Shown: positions 7,138-56,426, counted from the first letter of the stretch. The stretch: 64,000 bases of DNA from IMGVR_UViG_3300019458_000020:186001-250000, one strand, 5' to 3'. Notes: generated by a model not told the origin, from the letters alone. Numbers and translations: made by a program.

Positions 7138-7617
7138 TCAAACTTTAATTTTCTTGAAGGCATCTTCCAGTCGTTGTTTTACTTCCGTTTTGATTCTCTC
7201 TTCTGCATAGTATTCCATTCGTTTTTCTACACGTTTTTCGATTTCAGCATCATTAGCCCAAAATTTTATAGCATCATCAACCGATTTACGAATCAATTCA
7301 TCGACGTGATTACGAACGAGGCTATCTATCTCCGTTTTAATAGCCGGATGAAGAGTGACCTTTTCTACCTGTCCGGCCCAATTTGTTTTAATTATACCTA
7401 CCTGAGAATTTGTTTCAGATATCATATCTTTTTCAATAGATGATTTCAAGCTGTTACAGAATTCTCTTATAGTTTCCGAATTTGCTACCGACTTTAAATG
7501 CTTTTCTGAAAACTTTTGGACAACAGAATTACGAATATCGACATCAACTTTTTCATCCCCACCAATAAGACGTTCCAACGCCTCTTTACTATTAATTTGT
7601 AATGTTAATTGACTCAT
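7138..7617 (-). CDS. hypothetical helical protein
   Basis: ORF track 159 aa. Confidence 0.75.
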   Translation of the reverse strand: MSQLTLQINSKEALERLIGGDEKVDVDIRNSVVQKFSEKHLKSVANSETIREFCNSLKSSIEKDMISETNSQVGIIKTNWAGQVEKVTLHPAIKTEIDSLVRNHVDELIRKSVDDAIKFWANDAEIEKRVEKRMEYYAEERIKTEVKQRLEDAFKKIKV

Positions 7618-7633
7618 ATTATAACCTTTCTTT

Positions 7634-8038
7634 TTAATTGTTTACTGTTTCTTTACTTACCAAATACTGACGATTGGCTTCTATTTTCGCCAACTTTAAT
7701 TCCTCTAACATTTGTGTAACAGTCTTTCTGTATTCATTGATAAGAGAATACCATCTTATAATTCCGTTAACATCTTTGTATTTGTTAAATACTAAAGAAT
7801 ATCTTTCATTTGTCTCTCGCAACTCTTTCTGGAATCCTTCTTGTAAATCCCACAACTCACGGTAATAATTGGATTTAGCTCCCCTTTTATTCATAATTTT
7901 TTCGGATTTGGAGAAAATTTGTGCGTGAATCTTACGAACAAATTTCATATCTCGAATAGATTCACTCAATTCGTTGTATTTTTTCTTCCAATCGCAACGA
8001 TAGGTTAAATATTCTTGTTTAGTCGTAAATGTTATCAT
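7634..8038 (-). CDS. hypothetical coiled-coil protein
   Basis: ORF track; ATGA overlap with pth2 stop. Confidence 0.75.
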   Translation of the reverse strand: MITFTTKQEYLTYRCDWKKKYNELSESIRDMKFVRKIHAQIFSKSEKIMNKRGAKSNYYRELWDLQEGFQKELRETNERYSLVFNKYKDVNGIIRWYSLINEYRKTVTQMLEELKLAKIEANRQYLVSKETVNN

Positions 8039-8427
8039 AGTAATTTTAGTTTATTTGTTATATGTTGAATTTGTTCTTTGGTAGCCGGTCCAATACCTAA
8101 AGCTGTGACTGTTGATTCACCACCAAAAAAGTTTGGACAACCAGAATCGACCACAACATAAGTGGATAATCCGGCTGCCTTGGCTTCATAAGCAATTCTA
8201 TGAAGTTCAGAGAGACTGGAAACTTTTAAACAAATTTTAGTTCCCGGAGATTGAGGAAAATCTTTATGATATTCGGATAAAGCATGTTGATTTTTACAAT
8301 TTAAAAAGGCACCCAAAAAGGCATGACCAGCTTGTGCGGCAATTTTACCAGGCTCCATACCCAAATCTGTTCGGATTAAGGCGTAAAGTCTGTATGTATT
8401 ACCTTGAGTCTAGTATTCGTTATTCAT
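8035..8427 (-). CDS. pth2: peptidyl-tRNA hydrolase Pth2 with in-frame UAG at codon 6
   Basis: ATG AAT AAC GAA TAC TAG ACT CAA GGT...; LYALIRTDLGMEPGKIAAQAGHA, VVVDSG, VTALGIGP motifs; ORF track starts only at TTG 8364. Confidence 0.9.
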
Positions 8428-8454
8428 AGTTTTATTGGTTGATGTTTGTGAAAT

Positions 8455-8509
8455 TGGCGGTTGGGCATTGACTTGAACAATGAGAGACAGCTAAACTGTC
8501 ATCCCAACC
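8455..8509 (-). ncRNA. D-armless mini tRNA-like RNA 3 (55 nt)
   Basis: GGTTGGG AT GACAG TTTAG CTGTC TCT CATTG TTCAAGT CAATG CCCAACC GCCA. Confidence 0.85.
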
Positions 8510-8510
8510 T

Positions 8511-8563
8511 TGGTGGTCAAGAGAAGTCCTACTTCTTGGATTTGATAAACAAATACCTTGACC
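8511..8563 (-). ncRNA. D-armless mini tRNA-like RNA 2 (53 nt)
   Basis: GGTCAAG GT ATTTG TTTAT CAAAT CCA AGAAG TAGGA CTTCT CTTGACC ACCA. Confidence 0.8.
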
Positions 8564-8568
8564 GAAAT

Positions 8569-8754
8569 TGGTGCTCGGGGAAGGACTCGAACCTTCAACA
8601 TCAGAACTTTCGTTCCAATCCATTCGTCTCTCGACGGGAAGACAATAGGGATATACTTCCACCATACACTCCTTCACGGTTCCTTCAAAACGCCCTACGT
8701 ATGACGTATGAATCCTACTAAATGAACTTGTGCCCTTTATTCTGGTACCCAAGC
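8569..8754 (-). ncRNA. long tRNA-like RNA B (186 nt): acceptor + T arm, no D arm, large insert
   Basis: GCTTGGG/CCCGAGC-ACCA, CAGAA/TTCTG stem around ~133 nt insert, GAAGG TTCGAGT CCTTC T arm. Confidence 0.75.
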
Positions 8755-8757
8755 AAA

Positions 8758-8812
8758 TGGTGGTCAAGGAAGGAATTGAACCTTCATATATTCCTAAAGA
8801 ATAATCTTGACC
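8758..8812 (-). ncRNA. D-armless mini tRNA-like RNA 1 (55 nt)
   Basis: GGTCAAG AT TATTC TTTAG GAATA TAT GAAGG TTCAATT CCTTC CTTGACC ACCA. Confidence 0.85.
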
Positions 8813-8817
8813 GTAAA

Positions 8818-8939
8818 TGGTGGTTGATGTGGAATTGAACCACACCTTCGTAATATTTTGCAACCTTTTCACGAAGTCCTGACCTTTACTCAAACGATTA
8901 CTTACGCGTTTCATCGTTTTTTCGCTTTCAGTTTCAACC
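8818..8939 (-). ncRNA. long tRNA-like RNA A (122 nt): acceptor + T arm, no canonical D arm
   Basis: GGTTGA/TCAACC-ACCA, TGTGG TTCAATT CCACA, inner stems AAACGAT/ATCGTTT and CTTCGTGA/TTACGAAG. Confidence 0.75.
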
Positions 8940-8948
8940 ATAAAAAAA

Positions 8949-9024
8949 TGGCGCCCCATGTGGGAGTTGAACCCACACGAAATTGTTTTAGAGACAACTG
9001 CTCTACCAATTGAGCTAATGAGGC
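8949..9024 (-). tRNA. amber suppressor tRNA (anticodon CUA)
   Basis: GCCTCAT TA GCTC AATTGGTA GAGC A GTTGT CT-CTA-AA ACAAT TTCGT GTGGG TTCAACT CCCAC ATGGGGC G CCA. Confidence 0.92.
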
Positions 9025-9107
9025 GTAATGAGGATAGAATGTTGGCTTCGGTGTTTTCACCGTTGCCTTTAGAAACCTATGTTGGTTTAATATTCATTCT
9101 ATTAATA

Positions 9108-9135
9108 ACTATATACCAATTTCGTGTTTTGTCAA
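9108..9135 (-). promoter_or_regulatory. sigma70-type promoter of the suppressor/mini-tRNA/pth2 operon
   Basis: TTGACA-N16-TATAGT. Confidence 0.75.
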
Positions 9136-9144
9136 GAAAAAAAT

Positions 9145-9172
9145 AAACCCCCAAGTTTTAACTTGAGGGTTT
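9145..9172. terminator. intrinsic terminator hairpin
   Basis: AAACCCCCAAG-N6-CTTGAGGGTTT flanked by A and T runs, downstream of OMP gene. Confidence 0.65.
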
Positions 9173-13554: not shown

Positions 13555-14426
13555 CTAATACAAACGATTTAACTTTGGTTCTGTTACTAACCGTTTTTTA
13601 TATTTCACCCAATCACTCTCCCAGATATAAAAAACCTCATAACCAATCGACCTCAAACGATTTAATCGTTCCATAGTTTTATTGTATAAAAATCCATAAG
13701 TCACTCCTTTGGCTTTGTTCATGTCTCCGAGGTTATATCGTTCCGGATTACCATGCCAATAATCGCCTAAAAATTCATATATGGTATTATCTATGATTCC
13801 ATCCACAACCATAGAGTCTATTGATTGTTGTCTTTTAATAATTCCATAGTGGTCAAGAAATTCTTTTTCAATTGGGGATTCATATCGATTCCAAGAACAC
13901 TCGATACACGGAGCAGACTTTTTTTCATATAAAATAGCTTGATACCTACAAGTATATTCTACTTCTTTTTTACAAAACGAACATATTCTACACCATTTTT
14001 TTATATGTTCTTTAAAGAAAATACCATCCACTTGTTTTTTTCTATGTTTTCTTGTAATTAATTTTATATTTGATTTTTTTGTTAAATAATTTGTATGACA
14101 TATCATACAATTTCTATTTTTTATTTCGGATTGAACCGCGTTGTCTTTTCGACTGTATTCTGTTTCTTTTTTACATTTTGGACAAATTCTACACCAAAAC
14201 CCGTTTTTATTTAAAAATACATTATTATATATTTTTGGAGATTTCATAGAATCTCTCATTTTTTGTTTTGTTTCTTCTGAAACTTTGTGATTTTTATTCC
14301 TACAAGCACCACATAATTTATTATTATTAAACGAAACTTTGGCGTTCCATTTGTGTGAAAAAACAATCTCCTTGTTACAATCAGGACATTTTTACACCAT
14401 TTAGATTGTGGATTTTTATAAATCAT
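13555..14426 (-). pseudogene. Zn-ribbon repeat + DUF559/Vsr-like endonuclease, frameshifted near 14390
   Basis: repeated WCRICxxCxKE, then VDG...IYEFLGDYWHGNP...FYIWESDW; a further WCKKCPDC repeat upstream needs one more A in an A5 run. Confidence 0.7.
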
Positions 14427-21279: not shown

Positions 21280-21350
21280 GATTCTGATAGTTTAGTTAGA
21301 AGAACACTGCCGTTGAGGCGGGGGCACGGGTGCAATTCCCGTTCAGATCA
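21280..21350 (+). tRNA. degenerate tRNA-like element (possible Gln UUG pseudo-tRNA)
   Basis: GATTCTGA/TCAGATC, CTGCC GTTGA GGCGG, ACGGG TGCAATT CCCGT; no CCA. Confidence 0.5.
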
Positions 21351-23527: not shown

Positions 23528-23616
23528 GGGCGTGTGGCGAAGCTGGTTGAACCGCGGCAGACTTAAAATCTGCTACTTAGGAAACATCGGGGGTTCGATT
23601 CCCTCCACGCCTACCA
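23528..23616 (+). tRNA. tRNA-Leu(UAA)
   Basis: GGGCGTG/CACGCCT, loop CT-TAA-AA, long variable arm, CCA. Confidence 0.95.
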
Positions 23617-24358
23617 TTTTAGGGTCATGTCTTCGGGACCAAATATTTATCTTCTTGACATCAATACCATTTCTAAGTGCGTGTTTTTTAACACTACTAG
23701 CAGATACTTTTAATTTTCTAGCAACTTCTGATATGGGATTGTTGGATAATAGAGAAATCATTTCTTCATTTGAAGGCCATTTGATTTTTATCTTGAAAAC
23801 ATTTCCAACAGATGAATAACGGCTTCTTATGGTTTCTATTCTTTTTTGTTGTTCTTCATAAATTTTCGATTGTAGGAAATGAATTCCACGTTTTTCAATC
23901 AAATCATTGATTCGGTAGTAGTTTCCCCCATAACCAACAAGTCCACATTTTAATAATGCTTCTCTTCGTGTATAAGATGATTCTATGGATATTATCAATT
24001 CTTCATCCGTGACGTAATGGCCTTTCTTTTGTTTTTTTCTAGCTCTATAATTTGGAGTCAATGCATGACAATTACAACAAAAAAGTTTAAGATTTTCCAA
24101 TTCATTATTTTTTCTATTGCCATCGACATGATGTAATTCTAACGGAATTGATTCATTTTTCCATTTTGTCAACTGGCAACCTTCACATCGATGTTCTTTT
24201 ACACCATCTTTTATTAGTTTAAGTTTTAATCTAAAAGTTGTCATGGTTATACATATACAACAAGTGTGAGTTCTAGTTAATTTAATTCTTGACTCTCTTT
24301 GAAAATCTGATACTCTCATCCTATGATTGAAGTTCCACGACTTCCACGGATTACTCAT
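23573..24358 (-). CDS. HNH homing endonuclease
   Basis: CEGC...LELHHVDGNRKNNELENLKLFCCNCH; 3' end overlaps tRNA-Leu antisense. Confidence 0.9.
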   Translation of the reverse strand: MSNPWKSWNFNHRMRVSDFQRESRIKLTRTHTCCICITMTTFRLKLKLIKDGVKEHRCEGCQLTKWKNESIPLELHHVDGNRKNNELENLKLFCCNCHALTPNYRARKKQKKGHYVTDEELIISIESSYTRREALLKCGLVGYGGNYYRINDLIEKRGIHFLQSKIYEEQQKRIETIRSRYSSVGNVFKIKIKWPSNEEMISLLSNNPISEVARKLKVSASSVKKHALRNGIDVKKINIWSRRHDPKMVGVEGIEPPMFPK

Positions 24359-25049: not shown

Positions 25050-26144
25050 ATGAAAATTGATTTGGCTTCGATTGACCGTGAACAATTCATGGTTCACGAA
25101 CACATTCTTTTTGGGGAAGTCGTGTATCTCGTCCAACCACAACATATTGGTTGTAAGTGGACACAGGCCAATAAACATCTCCGGTCTGCTGTCTTCAATT
25201 CTGAAGGTGAACTGATTTCAATGGGTTTTCCCAAATTCACAAACTGGAGCGAAAACCCGGACAACTTCCCTGTTCCTACTTCTCTGAATGGTTGTAAGGT
25301 TATGGAGAAGCTTGATGGTTCTCTTTTGATTGTTTCCAAATACAAGGGTCAATTCATCCTTCGTACTCGTGGCACCATTAATGCCGAAAACCTTGACAAC
25401 GGCCATGAACTGGCTTTGTTGAAACAGAAGTATCCAGAAATCTTTAAGTTTCAATCTTGTGGAATGGAAACTTGGCCGTTTTCTCTTTTGTTTGAATGGG
25501 TTTCTCCTATTAATCGAATTGTTTTGAGTTACGGCGATGAAGCGGATTTCATTTTGGTTGGTGGTATCTACCATGACAAATGCATTCTTTGGGACCAAGA
25601 GTGGTTAGACGCAATGGCCAAGGGTTTTGGTTGTAAACGTCCGATTACATATAACTTTCCTTCTGTAGATGACTTAATTGCCAATGTTGACCAGTGGAAA
25701 GGCAAAGAGGGAGTTGTTATCTATTCCAAAGACGGTCAAGCTCTCCATAAAGTTAAATCGGCTTGGTATCTCGTTTTACATAGAATGAAGGAATCCTTAT
25801 CATCCATTGATAAAGTTGTGGATGTTTGGTTTGTTCAGGGGAAATTACCATATCAAGAATTTGAAGAATATATTACATCGACTTTTGATTGGGAATTGTG
25901 GAATCAAATTCGGGGAGAAGTTAGCCAAATTTGTGATGGTTGGAAAGAAGTTCAACGAATAGTTCAAGGTATGAAATCGTTCGTTGAACCGCTAAATACC
26001 TGGTCAAGAAAAGATGCAGCAAAAAAGATTATTGATTCATACGGAATCACTAATCGAAGTTCCTTTTGTTTTCAATTGTTAGATGGAAAAGAATTATGTG
26101 ACGATGCTCTAAAAAAACTTTTGTGGCAAGTTCTCAAAAAGTAA
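25050..26144 (+). CDS. RNA ligase, T4 Rnl1-like
   Basis: GFPKFTNW, motif I EKLDGSL, LLFEWV, KEGVVI, KVKSAWY. Confidence 0.85.
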   Translation: MKIDLASIDREQFMVHEHILFGEVVYLVQPQHIGCKWTQANKHLRSAVFNSEGELISMGFPKFTNWSENPDNFPVPTSLNGCKVMEKLDGSLLIVSKYKGQFILRTRGTINAENLDNGHELALLKQKYPEIFKFQSCGMETWPFSLLFEWVSPINRIVLSYGDEADFILVGGIYHDKCILWDQEWLDAMAKGFGCKRPITYNFPSVDDLIANVDQWKGKEGVVIYSKDGQALHKVKSAWYLVLHRMKESLSSIDKVVDVWFVQGKLPYQEFEEYITSTFDWELWNQIRGEVSQICDGWKEVQRIVQGMKSFVEPLNTWSRKDAAKKIIDSYGITNRSSFCFQLLDGKELCDDALKKLLWQVLKK

Positions 26145-31791: not shown

Positions 31792-32028
31792 ATGAAATAC
31801 AATAATAACACTACGGCCACAGCTACCGGTAACAGTTCCAAACGAAAGATTGGTGGTTACAACAGCTCGATTCTTCGGGCCAAACGTAATCAGAAGCGAC
31901 ATGAAGCCGAGGCACGAAACCAAGCGTGGTCCGATTTGACTCCAAAGCAACAACTGGCCAGTCTCGCCGGCCGCAGGGGTGAATCCAAACGTCAAGTGGC
32001 ACGCATTCAAGCAGCCAACAAGAGTTAA
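31792..32028 (+). CDS. small basic protein
   Basis: leaderless promoter TTGACA..TATAAT-N6-ATG. Confidence 0.75.
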   Translation: MKYNNNTTATATGNSSKRKIGGYNSSILRAKRNQKRHEAEARNQAWSDLTPKQQLASLAGRRGESKRQVARIQAANKS

Positions 32029-32176
32029 GTTTTCCGGCATGGATGGATACGATGGATAAAGGAGAACCCGGTTCTTCCCCACGTTCAAAGGCCACCAAAC
32101 AAAGTCAAGTGTCGAAAGATGCTTGACTTTTTTATTTTATGTCGTAAGTTCACGTCAACAGGTGTCAAACCGAGGA

Positions 32177-36287: not shown

Positions 36288-36686
36288 ATGAAAGATAAAA
36301 TCTTAGAACTTCACAATTCAGGAAAATCATATAGAGAAATAAGACAAATTTTAGGATGTTCACATTCTCTCATTTCTTACTATGTTAACCCGGATGGCAA
36401 AACAAAACAACTCCAAAGACAAAATAAAAATCGTTTTATAAAAAGAGAAAAATACAAGTTATCTATGGGAGGAAAATGTTGTAAATGTGGATATGACCGT
36501 TGTCTTGCAGCCTTGCATTTTCATCATAAAAACCCAGAAGAAAAAAAGTTTTTGTTAAGTTCTGCTATGTGGGGAGTAAATTCAATAACCGAAGAAGATA
36601 TCTTAAATGAAATTAAGAAATGTGACTTGATTTGTGCAAATTGTCACGCAGAGTATCATTATCCAAATACTCTCAAGAAATGGTAG
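36288..36686 (+). CDS. HTH + HNH homing endonuclease
   Basis: CCKCGY...LHFHHKNP...KCDLICANCHAEYH; stop lies in tRNA-iMet antisense. Confidence 0.88.
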   Translation: MKDKILELHNSGKSYREIRQILGCSHSLISYYVNPDGKTKQLQRQNKNRFIKREKYKLSMGGKCCKCGYDRCLAALHFHHKNPEEKKFLLSSAMWGVNSITEEDILNEIKKCDLICANCHAEYHYPNTLKKW

Positions 36687-37386: not shown

Positions 37387-37660
37387 AAATAACTATACGA
37401 CAGAATATAAAAACGTCAAGTCTTTACAGCAATCTTTTTCTCTGGTCGCCCTTACCAACAATGTTGCCATTTCTATCACGGGTTATGTTCTCTCGTTCAT
37501 TGTATTTGGCAATAATCTTGCCAGTTCTATCACGGATAATGTCTCTATCAATTTTTCCGATGATTTTTCCCTCACGATTTCTAAGATATGCATCATTCAT
37601 ATAACGAACATATCACAAATAAAATAATTGTCAATCGCATTCTTGTTATACATATCAGAT

Positions 37661-38494
37661 ATGACAAATACATTAAAGACCGAAAAGATAAGTGGAATAT
37701 ACAAAATTATCAATAATATCAATGATAAATACTACGTTGGTAGTTCAAATAACATTTACAAACGATGGAAATATCACAAGCAAGATTTAAATCGAGGCAA
37801 TCACAGGTCACAATATTTGCAACGTGCGTGGAACAAATACGGTGAAGATAATTTTACTTTTGTAGTCACCGAATTAATTATATTGGATGAATTACTTTTA
37901 CAAATAGAACAAGAATATCTTAATATTGCTTGTCAAGAAAAGGAAAAATGTTATAATTCATCTTTTGTTGCTGGAAAAATTGAAATGAATGAGATTACGA
38001 GAAACAAAATAAGTCAATCTCACAAAGGAAAGAAATTATCCAAGGAAACAAAAGAAAAGTTACGGCAATGTAATTTAGGAAAAAGATTATCAGAAGAAAC
38101 TAAAAAGAAAATTAGTGATGCACACAAAGGAAAAGTTTTAAGTCAACCCAAAGGATGGCATCATACCGAAGAATCAAAGAAAAAAATTAGCCAGAAATTA
38201 AAAGGAAAATATGTTGGAATATTGAGTCATAAATTTGGTACTAAACATACTGAAGAATGGAAAAAACAATGGAGAGAAAGACTGAAAAATCATCATCCGA
38301 GGTTAGACAAAACTGTATATCGATTTCAAAACGAAGTTACCAACGAAGTTTTTGACGGGTTGCAGTTTGATTTTAGAGTAAAATATAACATTCCTCCAGG
38401 AAATTTATGTCATATAATTCGAGGAAGGAGAAAATCTATACAAGGATGGAAATTGGTGGTCCGACCGGGATTCGAACCCGGAACAAAGCTTTAG
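37661..38494 (+). CDS. GIY-YIG homing endonuclease with NUMOD3 repeats
   Basis: SGIYKIINNINDKYYVGSS; repeated GKKLSxETKxKIS and HTEExKKKIS; 3' end overlaps tRNA-Arg antisense. Confidence 0.92.
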   Translation: MTNTLKTEKISGIYKIINNINDKYYVGSSNNIYKRWKYHKQDLNRGNHRSQYLQRAWNKYGEDNFTFVVTELIILDELLLQIEQEYLNIACQEKEKCYNSSFVAGKIEMNEITRNKISQSHKGKKLSKETKEKLRQCNLGKRLSEETKKKISDAHKGKVLSQPKGWHHTEESKKKISQKLKGKYVGILSHKFGTKHTEEWKKQWRERLKNHHPRLDKTVYRFQNEVTNEVFDGLQFDFRVKYNIPPGNLCHIIRGRRKSIQGWKLVVRPGFEPGTKL

Positions 38495-48013: not shown

Positions 48014-48328
48014 TTATATACACTCCAATACTTCAGCGAACGCTCGATTCAAATCTCCTTGGTCACAGGCAAGGGGATAACCTTCTGGACCATACTTTGA
48101 AATAATATCCTTGATTCGTTGACGTGCAGGAGACTTCAAGAATGTTTCACGTTTGATTCTTTGTTCATTAGCTTTTCTTGTGGCTTCTTCTTCCGTCAAA
48201 CCCGTTCCACAAACTACTCTTCCATCTGAACAGAATAGAAATTGTCTCCAATAACTTTCATGGAAACCCATACAATTTTCTCCGTTTACTAAATGTGGTG
48301 GTTCATCTTTATTAATGATAGTATTCAT
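48014..48328 (-). CDS. hypothetical protein
   Basis: ATGA overlap. Confidence 0.7.
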   Translation of the reverse strand: MNTIINKDEPPHLVNGENCMGFHESYWRQFLFCSDGRVVCGTGLTEEEATRKANEQRIKRETFLKSPARQRIKDIISKYGPEGYPLACDQGDLNRAFAEVLECI

Positions 48329-49170
48329 TGGATTTTAGAACGGAGATAATTCTTATACATTTCAACGGTCTTTTTGCCGACGGATTTCTTTACGGCTTCG
48401 GATTCCACAATTTCTCCCTTACCTTCTCTCAAAACATCTTCTGTCATGGCAGAGATAATATCTCTCATTTTTTCCATACAATGTCCTGGCAATTTATCCA
48501 AGACATGTTCTAGTCGCATCAAAGTCACCCACTCGTCCGCAACGGCGTTGGCATCATCCAACACTTTAAGTTGTGAAGGGTCAACAACAGGTCTTGGTGT
48601 GGATGTTTCTTTGAAAGAATCTCCCTTATGTTTACAAATAAGTCTCTCACCATTGCTTAGAGTAATTTCAATCAAAGGCCGGAGGACGACACCTTCCCGC
48701 TTTTTTGGTTCTGTGATTCCATTTCTTACTGACTGAACACTTGGTTTGTCTCGTTCGGCATCCAAAGCCACAAGGTCAGTAGAAACTTTTGTATAATCGA
48801 CAAATTCGAGGCCCAATTTCTTTGCTATATCCGCAGCGTCCGGAACTGATAACCAACAATCACCAATTTGAACATCGAAGACAACGAATTTTAGTTCCTT
48901 TCCGTAAGTTGCCGACATTCCTTGTTGACTTCCGCCGTAAGCTTCACCAAAAACTGTTACATCTTTGTCAATAGGCGAACCAAGGTCTTTGAATTGTTGA
49001 ATTAAATTTGTTTCATCAAACAAAGCTACGAAACGTACGTGACTTTCTCCACCAGAGAAGTAACGAATACTTCCATCTGACGGACGAAACGTGACGTGTG
49101 CATAGGTTCCATGAATTTTCTCCAAGGCATAACATTCCTTAAACAAAAGGATTGTCTGTTCTTTATACAA
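48325..49170 (-). CDS. RNA ligase, Rnl2-like
   Basis: motif I EKIHGT, VFGEAYG, FVVFDV, REGVVLRP, LICKHK. Confidence 0.85.
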   Translation of the reverse strand: MYKEQTILLFKECYALEKIHGTYAHVTFRPSDGSIRYFSGGESHVRFVALFDETNLIQQFKDLGSPIDKDVTVFGEAYGGSQQGMSATYGKELKFVVFDVQIGDCWLSVPDAADIAKKLGLEFVDYTKVSTDLVALDAERDKPSVQSVRNGITEPKKREGVVLRPLIEITLSNGERLICKHKGDSFKETSTPRPVVDPSQLKVLDDANAVADEWVTLMRLEHVLDKLPGHCMEKMRDIISAMTEDVLREGKGEIVESEAVKKSVGKKTVEMYKNYLRSKIQ

Positions 49171-55288: not shown

Positions 55289-55603
55289 TTATTCATTTGA
55301 TATAATTATTCGGAATGGTTTAGAGATGTAAATTTCCTGTTGATTACTTAATTGAAAGTAAACGAATCCGTTGTTAACAATTGGTTTATTAAATGTTTTC
55401 CAATTTGTTACGACGTGGCCCCTTTCATTTAATTGTTCTATGATACAAATTTGTTTTGTAGATATTTTTTTCTTTTGGAAATTTATTGGTGGAGAAAAAT
55501 AAAAAGTTCCGCTTAGTATTGTCAGCCAAATCATTATTAGACCAATCAAAATCATTAATATATTTGTGTAATTTTTTTTCATATAATGAATTAATTTATT
55601 CAT
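55289..55603 (-). CDS. membrane-anchored hypothetical protein
   Basis: N-terminal TM. Confidence 0.65.
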   Translation of the reverse strand: MNKLIHYMKKNYTNILMILIGLIMIWLTILSGTFYFSPPINFQKKKISTKQICIIEQLNERGHVVTNWKTFNKPIVNNGFVYFQLSNQQEIYISKPFRIIISNE

Positions 55604-56426
55604 AAGATGGTATCATTCTTTGTAATTCTTGTGGTTGTTCTGTAAATTTCCAACAAGGTTTGACTATCCAACGTGTTCTTTCCACGTAATCACCGGAAGA
55701 CAATATGGCATTTCTTAACACCGCGTTGTGTTTATAATCCGGGTCAATGTAAGTTTCCTTAACAATTAATCGTCCATGACGAAATCCCTTTGGATAATCC
55801 ACTGCCCAACTTTTCTCTTTTTCAAAAATCATATCAATCATCTCTGATTGACTTTTACCATTTAATTGTTTGTGAGAAAATAATGATTGTGCAACCATTG
55901 ACACACTGTTTCGGATACAATCTTGTTGTCTCCAAACAAAATAATTATAAACTTCCGTTGGGTCAGGAATGGTGAAAACACGAGCATCAAAGAAAGCCAA
56001 TTTCATTGCTTCGACGATGACTTTATCTGTACTCACTTTCTTTTGGTCGGATAAATTCATCCATCTAGCTCGTCGGAGCATATTGAATTCGGCAGTCATG
56101 ATACTCGAAGAAACACTCACCATTTTTTGAATATTTCCATCAAACCAAGCACAAGTTTGTGGCGTGGCAAAATCAGTCAATAATAGAGAAATTTCATCGG
56201 ATTGAGTGTAAGCAAATACAACTCCTTGAACTTCTTTACATAAAGAAATAATGGAATTATCCATGTCGTCAAACAACCCTTGGTCGAATGGTTTTGTTAA
56301 ACCTTTGGTGTAAGTGTGGAAACTTTTACCGTCAAGTCTAAGTATAGAATACGTTCGTCGGGGAAGAAACGTTCTAGTTCTATCCTCATAATTTAATTTC
56401 ATTCTGTCGCCTAACGTATCTTTCAT
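55596..56426 (-). CDS. thg1: tRNA-His guanylyltransferase Thg1-like
   Basis: DRMK.NYE, ILRLDGKSFHTYT, YTQSDEISLLL, FDARVF, WRQQDCIRNS. Confidence 0.95.
   Translation of the reverse strand: MKDTLGDRMKLNYEDRTRTFLPRRTYSILRLDGKSFHTYTKGLTKPFDQGLFDDMDNSIISLCKEVQGVVFAYTQSDEISLLLTDFATPQTCAWFDGNIQKMVSVSSSIMTAEFNMLRRARWMNLSDQKKVSTDKVIVEAMKLAFFDARVFTIPDPTEVYNYFVWRQQDCIRNSVSMVAQSLFSHKQLNGKSQSEMIDMIFEKEKSWAVDYPKGFRHGRLIVKETYIDPDYKHNAVLRNAILSSGDYVERTRWIVKPCWKFTEQPQELQRMIPSYE

Follow-up and report, generated by a model that had tools for sequence, protein, structure and literature searches.

An early in-frame UAG in a phage peptidyl-tRNA hydrolase gene as a probable suppressor-dependent gate linked to a phage tRNA(CUA)

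The pth2 gene and its surroundings

The window, by which we mean the whole 64,000-nucleotide stretch of phage DNA analysed here, encodes a helicase, two RNA ligases, a Thg1-like tRNA-His guanylyltransferase, homing endonucleases, nine tRNAs and a tmRNA, with no structural or late genes among them (Table 1). On its minus strand, a frame read directly from the window opens with ATG (8427-8425) AAT AAC GAA TAC and then meets a TAG (8412-8410), after which come ACT CAA GGT AAT ACA TAC AGA CTT TAC GCC TTA ATC CGA ACA GAT and, following that GAT, TTG (8364-8362), GGT and ATG (8358-8356). The translation of this frame, the pth2 gene, is MNNEY*TQGNTYRLYALIRTDLGMEPGK..., and it ends at a TGA (8037-8035). 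A previous reading of the sequence alone (the sequence-only reading) had described an ATG followed by an in-frame TAG at codon 6 of pth2 and had held that no ATG, GTG or TTG lies between this TAG and TTG 8364. Our re-reading agrees on both points: there are zero such codons in the interval, and the sole alternative start of translation table 11 is an ATC within the first strand of the predicted protein, beta-1.

The Pfam profile PTH2 (PF01981, curated threshold 23 bits) matches residues 6-124 of the post-TAG piece over profile positions 1-115 (E 1.3e-26, 93.5 bits). The piece also aligns over its whole length with 2zv3, 1xty and 1wn2, residues 3-7 of these archaeal Pth2 structures pairing with query residues 6-8 at the start of the alignment. 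Pfam position 1 and the structures thus place beta-1 between the TAG and TTG 8364, where the sequence-only reading had located the conserved first strand. An AlphaFold2 model built from a 33-sequence input (mean pLDDT 92.8) has strands at residues 6-13, 57-63, 83-88 and 100-110. Since beta-1 is one of the four strands of the sheet, the piece absent from a shorter form would be a core element, and in the model a product started at the TTG or the ATG would be without one of the four core strands. K22 and D88 are invariant in the 33 sequences, and K22 pairs with residue 18 of 1xty; we take Lys18 and Asp86 of Sulfolobus Pth2 to be the conserved active-site residues. By domain, fold and active-site columns, the post-TAG piece appears to be a member of the Pth2 family and is a predicted enzyme, whose full fold including beta-1 is, according to the model, obtained only when the UAG is read through.

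The ORF that follows pth2 is probably coupled to it translationally, since its ATG overlaps the pth2 stop (ATGA). Because of this overlap at 8035-8038, control exerted at the early UAG may extend to the 134-aa ORF (7634-8038) and to a 159-aa ORF (7138-7617), neither of which has a family match. A Pfam search with ten ORFs neighbouring pth2 gave no match. RNA ligase and Thg1 genes also surround pth2 in two cultured phages, Atu_ph07 and Phosso, and in one metagenomic relative (L017) a tmRNA lies immediately upstream of pth2. One further tRNA called by ARAGORN in the window, tRNA-Gln(UUG) at 21281-21350, is atypical, being 70 nt long, AT-rich and ending in ATCA, and is unlike the tRNA(CUA).

Table 1. 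Positions of the pth2 unit and of other features in the window
Feature	Position	Strand	Basis or remark
Terminator-like hairpin of the preceding gene, just 5' of the promoter	9145-9172		
Sigma-70-type promoter TTGACA-16-TATAGT, predicted to drive the whole unit	9108-9135	-	11/12 consensus matches
Leader mini-ORF ATG AAT ATT AAA CCA ACA (MNIKPT)	9080-9097	-	ATG 10 nt past the -10 box
UAG no. 1, context ACA TAG GTT TC	9077-9079	-	52 nt 5' of the tRNA
tRNA, anticodon CUA, encoded CCA	8949-9024	-	ARAGORN; Rfam tRNA, 66.3 bits
Leader-frame continuation across the tRNA and the tRNA-like array	8432-9076	-	TAA 8434-8432, 4 nt 5' of pth2 ATG
Array of CCA-ending tRNA-like elements	8455-8865	-	Direct reading and folds
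Members of the array	8818-8865, 8758-8812, 8569-8754, 8511-8563, 8455-8509	-	
pth2 head ATG AAT AAC GAA TAC (MNNEY)	8413-8427	-	Direct reading
UAG no. 2, candidate pth2 gate, next base A	8410-8412	-	Direct reading and relatives
Beta-1 codons (YRLYALIR), 3' of the TAG and 5' of all starts	8371-8394	-	AlphaFold2, Pfam position 1
Earliest usable starts, TTG 8364-8362 and ATG 8358-8356 (M18)	8356-8364	-	Clade alignment
Pth2 domain, 124 codons after the TAG, TGA 8037-8035	8035-8409	-	Pfam, structures, model
ORF 3' of pth2, 134 aa, without family	7634-8038	-	ATG overlaps pth2 stop (ATGA)
tmRNA, tag peptide ...NAVAA	11242-11649	-	2.2 kb from the suppressor tRNA
TAG-ending ORFs	13555-14259, 23573-24358, 31823-32098, 36288-36686, 37628-38494		Backup stop 2-18 codons on
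Two RNA ligases and Thg1-like tRNA-His guanylyltransferase	25050-26144, 48325-49170, 55596-56426		

The early stop in related pth2 genes

A first scan of IMG/VR returned three relatives with 58-63% identity, all of which carry a TAG directly 5' of 'TLRLYA(L/I)VRTDLGM' and a tRNA(CUA) upstream. An alignment-based scan led to 36 viral loci and a metagenome scan to a further 80, from which a deduplicated informative set of 104 phage-type loci was obtained. These span 33-100% identity, their bodies are intact and the columns of the catalytic site are invariant. The nearest in-frame stop 5' of strand 1 is TAG in 100 of the 104, TGA in two and TAA in two; no ATG follows the TAG in 99 loci and no ATG, GTG or TTG in 96. 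In the control set of 76 archaeal Pth2 genes from GTDB genomes, by comparison, a start codon stands a few codons 5' of strand 1 in every case (ATG in 72, GTG or TTG in 4, start-less 0/76), and the 13 controls in which TAG is the nearest in-frame stop all have a start codon after it. Given 100/104 relatives with a TAG against 13/76 archaeal controls, a chance TAG is excluded. The early TAG is accordingly conserved in the 5' regions of related pth2 genes, and the caveat of the sequence-only reading, that a nonsense lesion might be involved, is contradicted by the recurrence of the same stop at the same place. One relative (L178) has a plain ATG start and no TAG.

Homologues with a sense codon at this position would speak against a conserved stop, and some database entries seem at first to provide them. 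Most clade proteins in databases are 107 aa long and start at the internal Met, which is a truncation artefact of gene callers. As for the apparently full-length entries, two that seemed to have a sense codon (P0002 and P0032) are code-15 translations of DNA that reads TAG, and a third (P0020) was called from a GTG directly 3' of the TAG. Since all three carry TAG in their DNA, the sense codons are spurious and the objection fails.

The strand-1 stretch, the 15-17 codons that separate the TAG from the internal ATG, is conserved as protein while varying synonymously (CTC/CTT, CGT/CGG/AGA, TTG/CTT/TTA). Beyond strand 1, TAG is nearly absent: from strand 1 to the stop of 97 complete genes (11,376 codons), TAG occurs twice, against 559 CAA/CAG codons, and the terminal stops are TGA in 55 genes, TAA in 42 and TAG in none. 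In most loci the early TAG lies 6-10 codons 5' of strand 1, preceded, where an ATG is present, by a head of variable sequence and of 1-25 codons from ATG to TAG. Its context is biased as well. Among 101 distinct contexts the base 3' of the TAG is G in 84, A in 13, C in 2 and T in 2, hence a purine in 97; the codon 5' of it encodes Thr in 68, and the codon 3' of it is GTT or GTA in 61 (GTG in L127). In E. coli genetics, efficient amber suppression is classically associated with a purine 3' of the stop. It might be supposed that the TAG is a DNA signal, part of a repeated promoter-like motif such as TAGGTTTC or ACRTAGGT, and this was rejected since the window shows no enrichment of either.

The gated pth2 genes form the 'LRLYA(L/I)VR' clade, while an archaeal-like 'KQVIVVR' Pth2 found in the cultured phages phiM12, Myrna, Sandalphon, RsoM2USA, Xoo-sp13 and SCTP-2 has ordinary ATG starts. 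When 25 kb of the window was compared with GenBank phages by megablast, no close relatives were returned. The only matches in bacterial metagenome-assembled genomes are three Verrucomicrobiota contigs (L037-L039), all with a tRNA(CUA) and a TAG-headed pth2; one (L039) lies on a 1.83-Mb contig, and the three, which may be prophages or mis-binned phages, may hint at hosts. In two IMG/VR loci (L016 and L030) the nearest stop is a TGA, with no start in the 26 and 43 codons that follow, respectively, and no tRNA within 3 kb of pth2; from their sequence it is possible that these are further TGA-gated pth2 genes.

The suppressor tRNA, the leader and the frame between them

The tRNA(CUA), called by both ARAGORN and Rfam, is encoded on the same strand as pth2, 536 nt 5' of the TAG; the sequence-only reading had put the distance at about 520 nt. 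Its cloverleaf is that of an ordinary elongator, with G1:C72 and discriminator G. We considered whether it could be an initiator that starts at UAG, which the G1:C72 pair and an anticodon stem without a run of three G:C pairs argue against, or a pyrrolysine tRNA, an ARAGORN label ('Pyl') that derives merely from the anticodon of an otherwise ordinary cloverleaf. As to the residue inserted at the UAG, neither similarity to the other tRNAs of the phage nor the aligned residue of homologues was informative. A permissive Rfam search for a theta- or HDV-like ribozyme beside the tRNA found none. In most loci with enough flanking sequence a tRNA(CUA) likewise lies upstream on the same strand, often within 10-600 nt. 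Tandem tRNA(CUA) pairs occur upstream of or near pth2 in a few relatives (L007/L008, 2742-2977; L018, 4091-4256; L154, 933-1100), and in L018 one of the two has a long variable arm, so that UAG may receive different amino acids.

Cultured phages allow the stop to be compared with the anticodon. Atu_ph07, an Agrobacterium phage of 490 kb, has a single suppressor tRNA with anticodon UCA and 267 genes that end in UGA (PMC6102473). We located this tRNA at 430,713-430,787, and the pth2 of the phage begins 'MIGEHF-TGA-INYEEL...KLRIYSIVRDDLEM', with an early TGA. Its metagenomic relatives (L019-L026) read 'MLTNSFL-TAG-EA...' at the equivalent head position, and the related Sinorhizobium phage Phosso reads 'MKY-TAG-VEEK...' with a tRNA(CUA) 4.5 kb upstream. 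Given TGA with UCA in Atu_ph07 and TAG with CUA in Phosso, the type of stop changes with the anticodon. The stop thus appears to covary with the suppressor, with Atu_ph07 as the one clear TGA case and L016 and L030 as possible others. The sequence-only reading had proposed that a complete Pth2 needs decoding of the UAG by the neighbouring tRNA(CUA), and the retention of the TAG by relatives together with the joint change of stop and anticodon favours this proposal.

Between the tRNA and pth2 lies an array of tRNA-like elements, whose T-arm and CCA parts are conserved in the relative L011. Three of them (8455-8509, 8511-8563 and 8758-8812), 53-55 nt long, have a 7-bp acceptor, a T-arm and CCA, no D-arm, and a middle hairpin tipped by UUA; two of the three fold identically (z about -3.5). 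As an anticodon, UUA would read UAA, and the 5-nt loop, UUUAG, is complementary to positions 34-38 of the tRNA(CUA) loop. ARAGORN makes no call on these three elements, and Rfam gives a weak, sub-threshold tRNA match at 8761-8812. A fourth element (8569-8754, minus strand, 186 nt), with a 7-bp acceptor GCTTGGG...CCCGAGC, a T-arm and CCA, is possibly a tRNA with a large insertion, and the last (8818-8865, minus strand) is a weaker T-arm/acceptor minihelix of 48 nt. The 186-nt and the 48-nt elements both lie inside the open leader frame described below.

The unit opens with a leader module that recurs in about 25 distinct loci and is conserved together with the promoter, which is itself shared with L011 and about 25 related loci. 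Its parts are the promoter, an ATG 7-12 nt past the -10 box, a peptide with (S)PT at its end, a TAG with G as the next base, and the tRNA(CUA) 12-58 nt on. Since the leader ATG lies only 7-12 nt past the -10 box, the sequence implies that the mRNA is leaderless or nearly so. The context ACA TAG GTT TC recurs at the leader TAGs and at the pth2 head TAGs of relatives. The sequence-only reading missed this second UAG-containing ORF as well as the frame that continues from it through the tRNA gene. In the window that frame, 216 codons long, contains no TAG and a single TAA/TGA, the terminal one, while the other two frames contain 7 and 13 TAA/TGA; an open frame was obtained in none of 5000 shuffles. 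The continuation is alike in L011, L130, L003 and L137, and in L011 (76% identity) the frame is open too, with no conservation of the encoded 'protein'.

The leader frame meets neither TAA nor TGA across the tRNA gene and continues into the Pth2 body in 16 of 24 loci; in 14 of these 16 there is no ATG after the tRNA, leaving that of the leader as the only one. In four of the 24, the window included, the frame closes at the pth2 head ATG or overlaps it (gaps of +4, -8, -4 and -4 nt), and in the other four it ends 48-603 nt 5' of pth2. In loci without an ATG of their own the spacers that separate the tRNA's 3' end from the second TAG measure 8, 11, 17, 23, 32, 50, 74, 83, 212 and 269 nt. All ten are 2 mod 3, and indels are therefore kept to multiples of three, which is a signature of translation. 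The phase statistic of short spacers alone, grouped by lineage, is modest (9/15 groups in one phase) and is convincing only for the loci without their own ATG. Two loci (L159 and L173) have only the first TAG, 5' of the tRNA. The Atu_ph07/Phosso clade has no UAG or UGA leader ORF upstream of the suppressor tRNA, and the leader module is, judging from these genomes, specific to one clade. In the window phage, the 3' half of the tRNA(CUA) and a following TTTTTTT (8942-8982, minus strand) score like an intrinsic terminator, and relatives have no such T-run; in the window phage, folding of the tRNA could end transcription before pth2.

A suppressor-dependent gate, its alternatives and a possible circuit

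The early UAG of pth2 is most probably a conserved suppressor-dependent translational gate, which possibly serves as an autoregulatory switch. Ribosomes would begin at ATG 8427, add five residues and reach the UAG, where release factor 1 of the host would terminate, as at every UAG, unless charged tRNA(CUA) competes. Lying 0.5 kb upstream of pth2, this tRNA would share its promoter, and only suppression would yield beta-1 and hence a complete Pth2. Since the gate lies in a variable N-terminal tail, the inserted residue would be immaterial and a failed attempt would cost only a pentapeptide. That suppression actually occurs at the UAG is what we infer, on comparative grounds, from the anatomy of the locus, the conservation of the stop, the biases of its position and context, the constraints on the frame and the covariation of stop and anticodon.

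It is possible that the TAG truly ends a tiny upstream ORF or bar-like minigene and that Pth2 is made from ATG 8358 or TTG 8364 as a protein of 107-109 aa without strand 1. We regard such an internal start as unlikely. It would account for the invariance of M18 (ATG 8358) in the clade and for the choice of gene callers in most database entries, and the TTG-started ORF, in which the PF01981 match begins only at profile position 12, still lies above the Pfam threshold with 80.2 bits. However, it leaves unexplained why the 15-17 codons separating the ATG from the TAG change synonymously while keeping their protein sequence, why they encode a strand that is core both in the model and in solved structures, and why, where a locus lacks an ATG near its TAG, the spacer lengths keep the frame. 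Moreover, on direct reading, a Shine-Dalgarno-like sequence is missing 5' of ATG 8358, and a Met or Leu at the position of M18 is usual in archaeal Pth2, where it is internal. A restart after the UAG at a non-canonical codon, or a bypass of the stop, would produce strand 1 without a suppressor tRNA. The prevalence of GTT and GTA (and of GTG in L127) directly after the TAG, one base from a start codon, could be taken to point this way, but the window has ACT in this place, GTT is, to our knowledge, not a bacterial start, and the linked tRNA(CUA), the covariation with TGA and UCA and the purine rule would all lack an explanation. We therefore deem this scenario highly improbable. That the stop is a nonsense lesion in a pth2 decaying into a pseudogene is scarcely credible: the sequence-only reading did note other apparent lesions in the window, but the same stop stands at the same place in 100/104 divergent loci whose bodies are intact and whose catalytic columns do not vary.

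Recoding of the whole genome is the remaining alternative. In crAss-like, Lak and jumbo phages that use code 15, a phage tRNA(CUA) reads TAG, and a role in the timing of expression has been proposed (10.1101/2021.08.26.457843; PMC10879173; PMC9523058). If the window phage used code 15 throughout, its pth2 would simply have one recoded codon and nothing specific to the gene. This is a very unlikely reading of the data, even though code-15 phages bearing a tRNA(CUA) are well described (10.1101/2021.08.26.457843; PMC9523058), TAG is rare as a terminator in the window (5/104 greedy ORFs) and some related contigs have split genes that are joined by a TAG. Random, Gln-like use of TAG predicts scatter, whereas the TAG of pth2 is confined to the head (2/11,376 body codons), no other gene in the 64 kb has a supported in-frame TAG, the leader ORF apart, and the gate of Atu_ph07 is a TGA although UGA is the commonest stop of that phage. 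A scan of the 64 kb for early TAGs (an ATG, at most 12 codons, a TAG, at least 80 open codons and no start nearby) found pth2 and the leader as the only convincing cases. No TAG interrupts any of the 57 ORFs that reach 120 aa; four end in one, with a backup stop at most 18 codons on. The five TAG-ending greedy ORFs each have a further stop within 18 codons, as expected if the suppressor reads terminal TAGs. The many in-frame TAGs that characterize code 15 are thus not found in the window, which covers early/RNA-repair-type genes only, and the late genes of the phage could be recoded. Since possible mid-gene TAGs are seen in genes neighbouring pth2 in four relatives (L004, L012, L016 and L029), part of the clade may have reassigned TAG across the genome. 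The Atu_ph07 case indicates that a gate exists without such reassignment.

The suppressor-dependent gate resembles code-15 recoding in that a phage suppressor tRNA would be needed to translate an in-frame TAG where the host treats TAG as a stop. It differs in that code-15 phages have their TAGs scattered over many late structural and lysis genes, whereas here a single stop lies in the first codons of one gene family; the gated pth2 is, moreover, physically linked to the tRNA, and Atu_ph07 still ends more genes with the matching stop than with any other. A second likeness is to prfB, the gene of release factor 2, which has an early in-frame UGA, is autoregulated by +1 frameshifting and senses its own product. 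In both cases a translation-factor gene has an early in-frame stop whose outcome reports the activity of the decoding or termination machinery, but the escape in pth2 would be a suppressor tRNA and the stop would be decoded by a factor other than Pth2. The bar minigenes of lambda, with 2-3 codons, sequester tRNA when host Pth is limiting, and share with pth2 a very short phage ORF with a stop and a tie to peptidyl-tRNA hydrolase biology. The sequence-only reading had suggested that an unsuppressed MNNEY minigene might, by promoting drop-off, feed back on the substrate of Pth2. Unlike bar, the pth2 heads (5 codons in the window) are followed by a conserved coding frame past the stop, and since their length varies from 1 to 25 codons the head does not look like a bar-type minigene.

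Why should Pth2 be tied to a suppressor? A plausible reason is that at suppressed natural UAG terminators ribosomes would enter 3' regions and reach mRNA ends, and amber suppression would lead to more stalled ribosomes and dropped-off peptidyl-tRNA, for Pth2 and the phage tmRNA to clear; suppression would set the amount or the timing of Pth2. Iyer et al. 2021 listed PTH2 among the RNA-repair genes of jumbo phages and proposed that it helps to rescue ribosomes after tRNA damage (PMC7824862). The gated genes are similar in belonging to the same family, in large phages, beside RNA ligases and tRNA-repair genes, and an early pth2 stop is not mentioned in that survey (PMC7824862). Nor did we find a published description of a suppressor-gated phage Pth2, subscription-only papers aside, and the recoding papers and the theta-ribozyme paper mention neither Pth nor a leader ORF. 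Phage suppressor tRNAs are usually explained as readers of a recoded genome. The best-conserved client of the suppressor here is one translation-maintenance gene, gated early and wired to the tRNA, and the same gate stands in a cultured phage that otherwise uses the stop codon normally (Atu_ph07). This suggests that phages sense and manage their own suppressor activity, with Pth2 as part of the cost control of suppression. The gate hypothesis is directly testable in the cultured Atu_ph07 and Phosso, a compact natural amber- or opal-dependent switch is at hand for testing, and gene callers truncate the Pth2 of this clade in most database entries.

In the window, the pth2 gate would be the second of two, as the transcript would open with the leaderless MNIKPT mini-ORF bearing a UAG of its own. 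Ribosomes that read through would go on across the tRNA gene and then the array, would terminate 4 nt 5' of the pth2 ATG and could restart at it. With two UAGs to pass, Pth2 output would track suppressor activity at about its square. A more far-reaching proposal, which we put forward tentatively and as possible rather than probable, is that the suppressor tRNA is nested in frame in the 5' part of the very ORF that needs it, making a self-limiting circuit with a two-UAG threshold. Its order would be a leaderless AUG, a short peptide, UAG, tRNA(CUA), an optional further UAG, and Pth2. When the suppressor is scarce, ribosomes would stop at the first UAG, the tRNA would fold and be excised, and the start-less remainder of pth2 would stay silent; when it is plentiful, ribosomes would traverse the tRNA sequence, prevent the tRNA from maturing and produce Pth2. 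Since the tRNA lies between two UAGs on one transcript, ribosomes that read through would have to unfold it, which suggests that maturation of the tRNA and translation of Pth2 exclude each other, a negative feedback on the suppressor.

As far as we could find, such a self-limiting suppressor-tRNA circuit is a form of regulation not described before. In attenuation by the leader peptides of trp and his, as in the pth2 unit, a short 5' ORF holds the sensed codon, here conserved together with a promoter (about 25 loci; 9135-9077 in the window). The thrU-tyrU-glyT-thrT-tufB operon is a tRNA-mRNA co-transcript and so, like the present unit, combines a tRNA and a translation-related protein gene on one transcript. 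What sets the pth2 unit apart from trp, his and tufB is that the reading frame itself crosses the tRNA gene and enters the protein gene, for which we know of no precedent and found none in the literature searched. In one relative (L003) an HNH endonuclease-like ORF (2560-2978) lies between the tRNA(CUA) and pth2 in the leader frame, its stop overlapping the pth2 ATG. In the same locus the head (ATG AAT AAT AC., then ACA TAG GTT TC) stands in duplicate, once on either side, as though the tRNA cassette had been inserted into the head of pth2.
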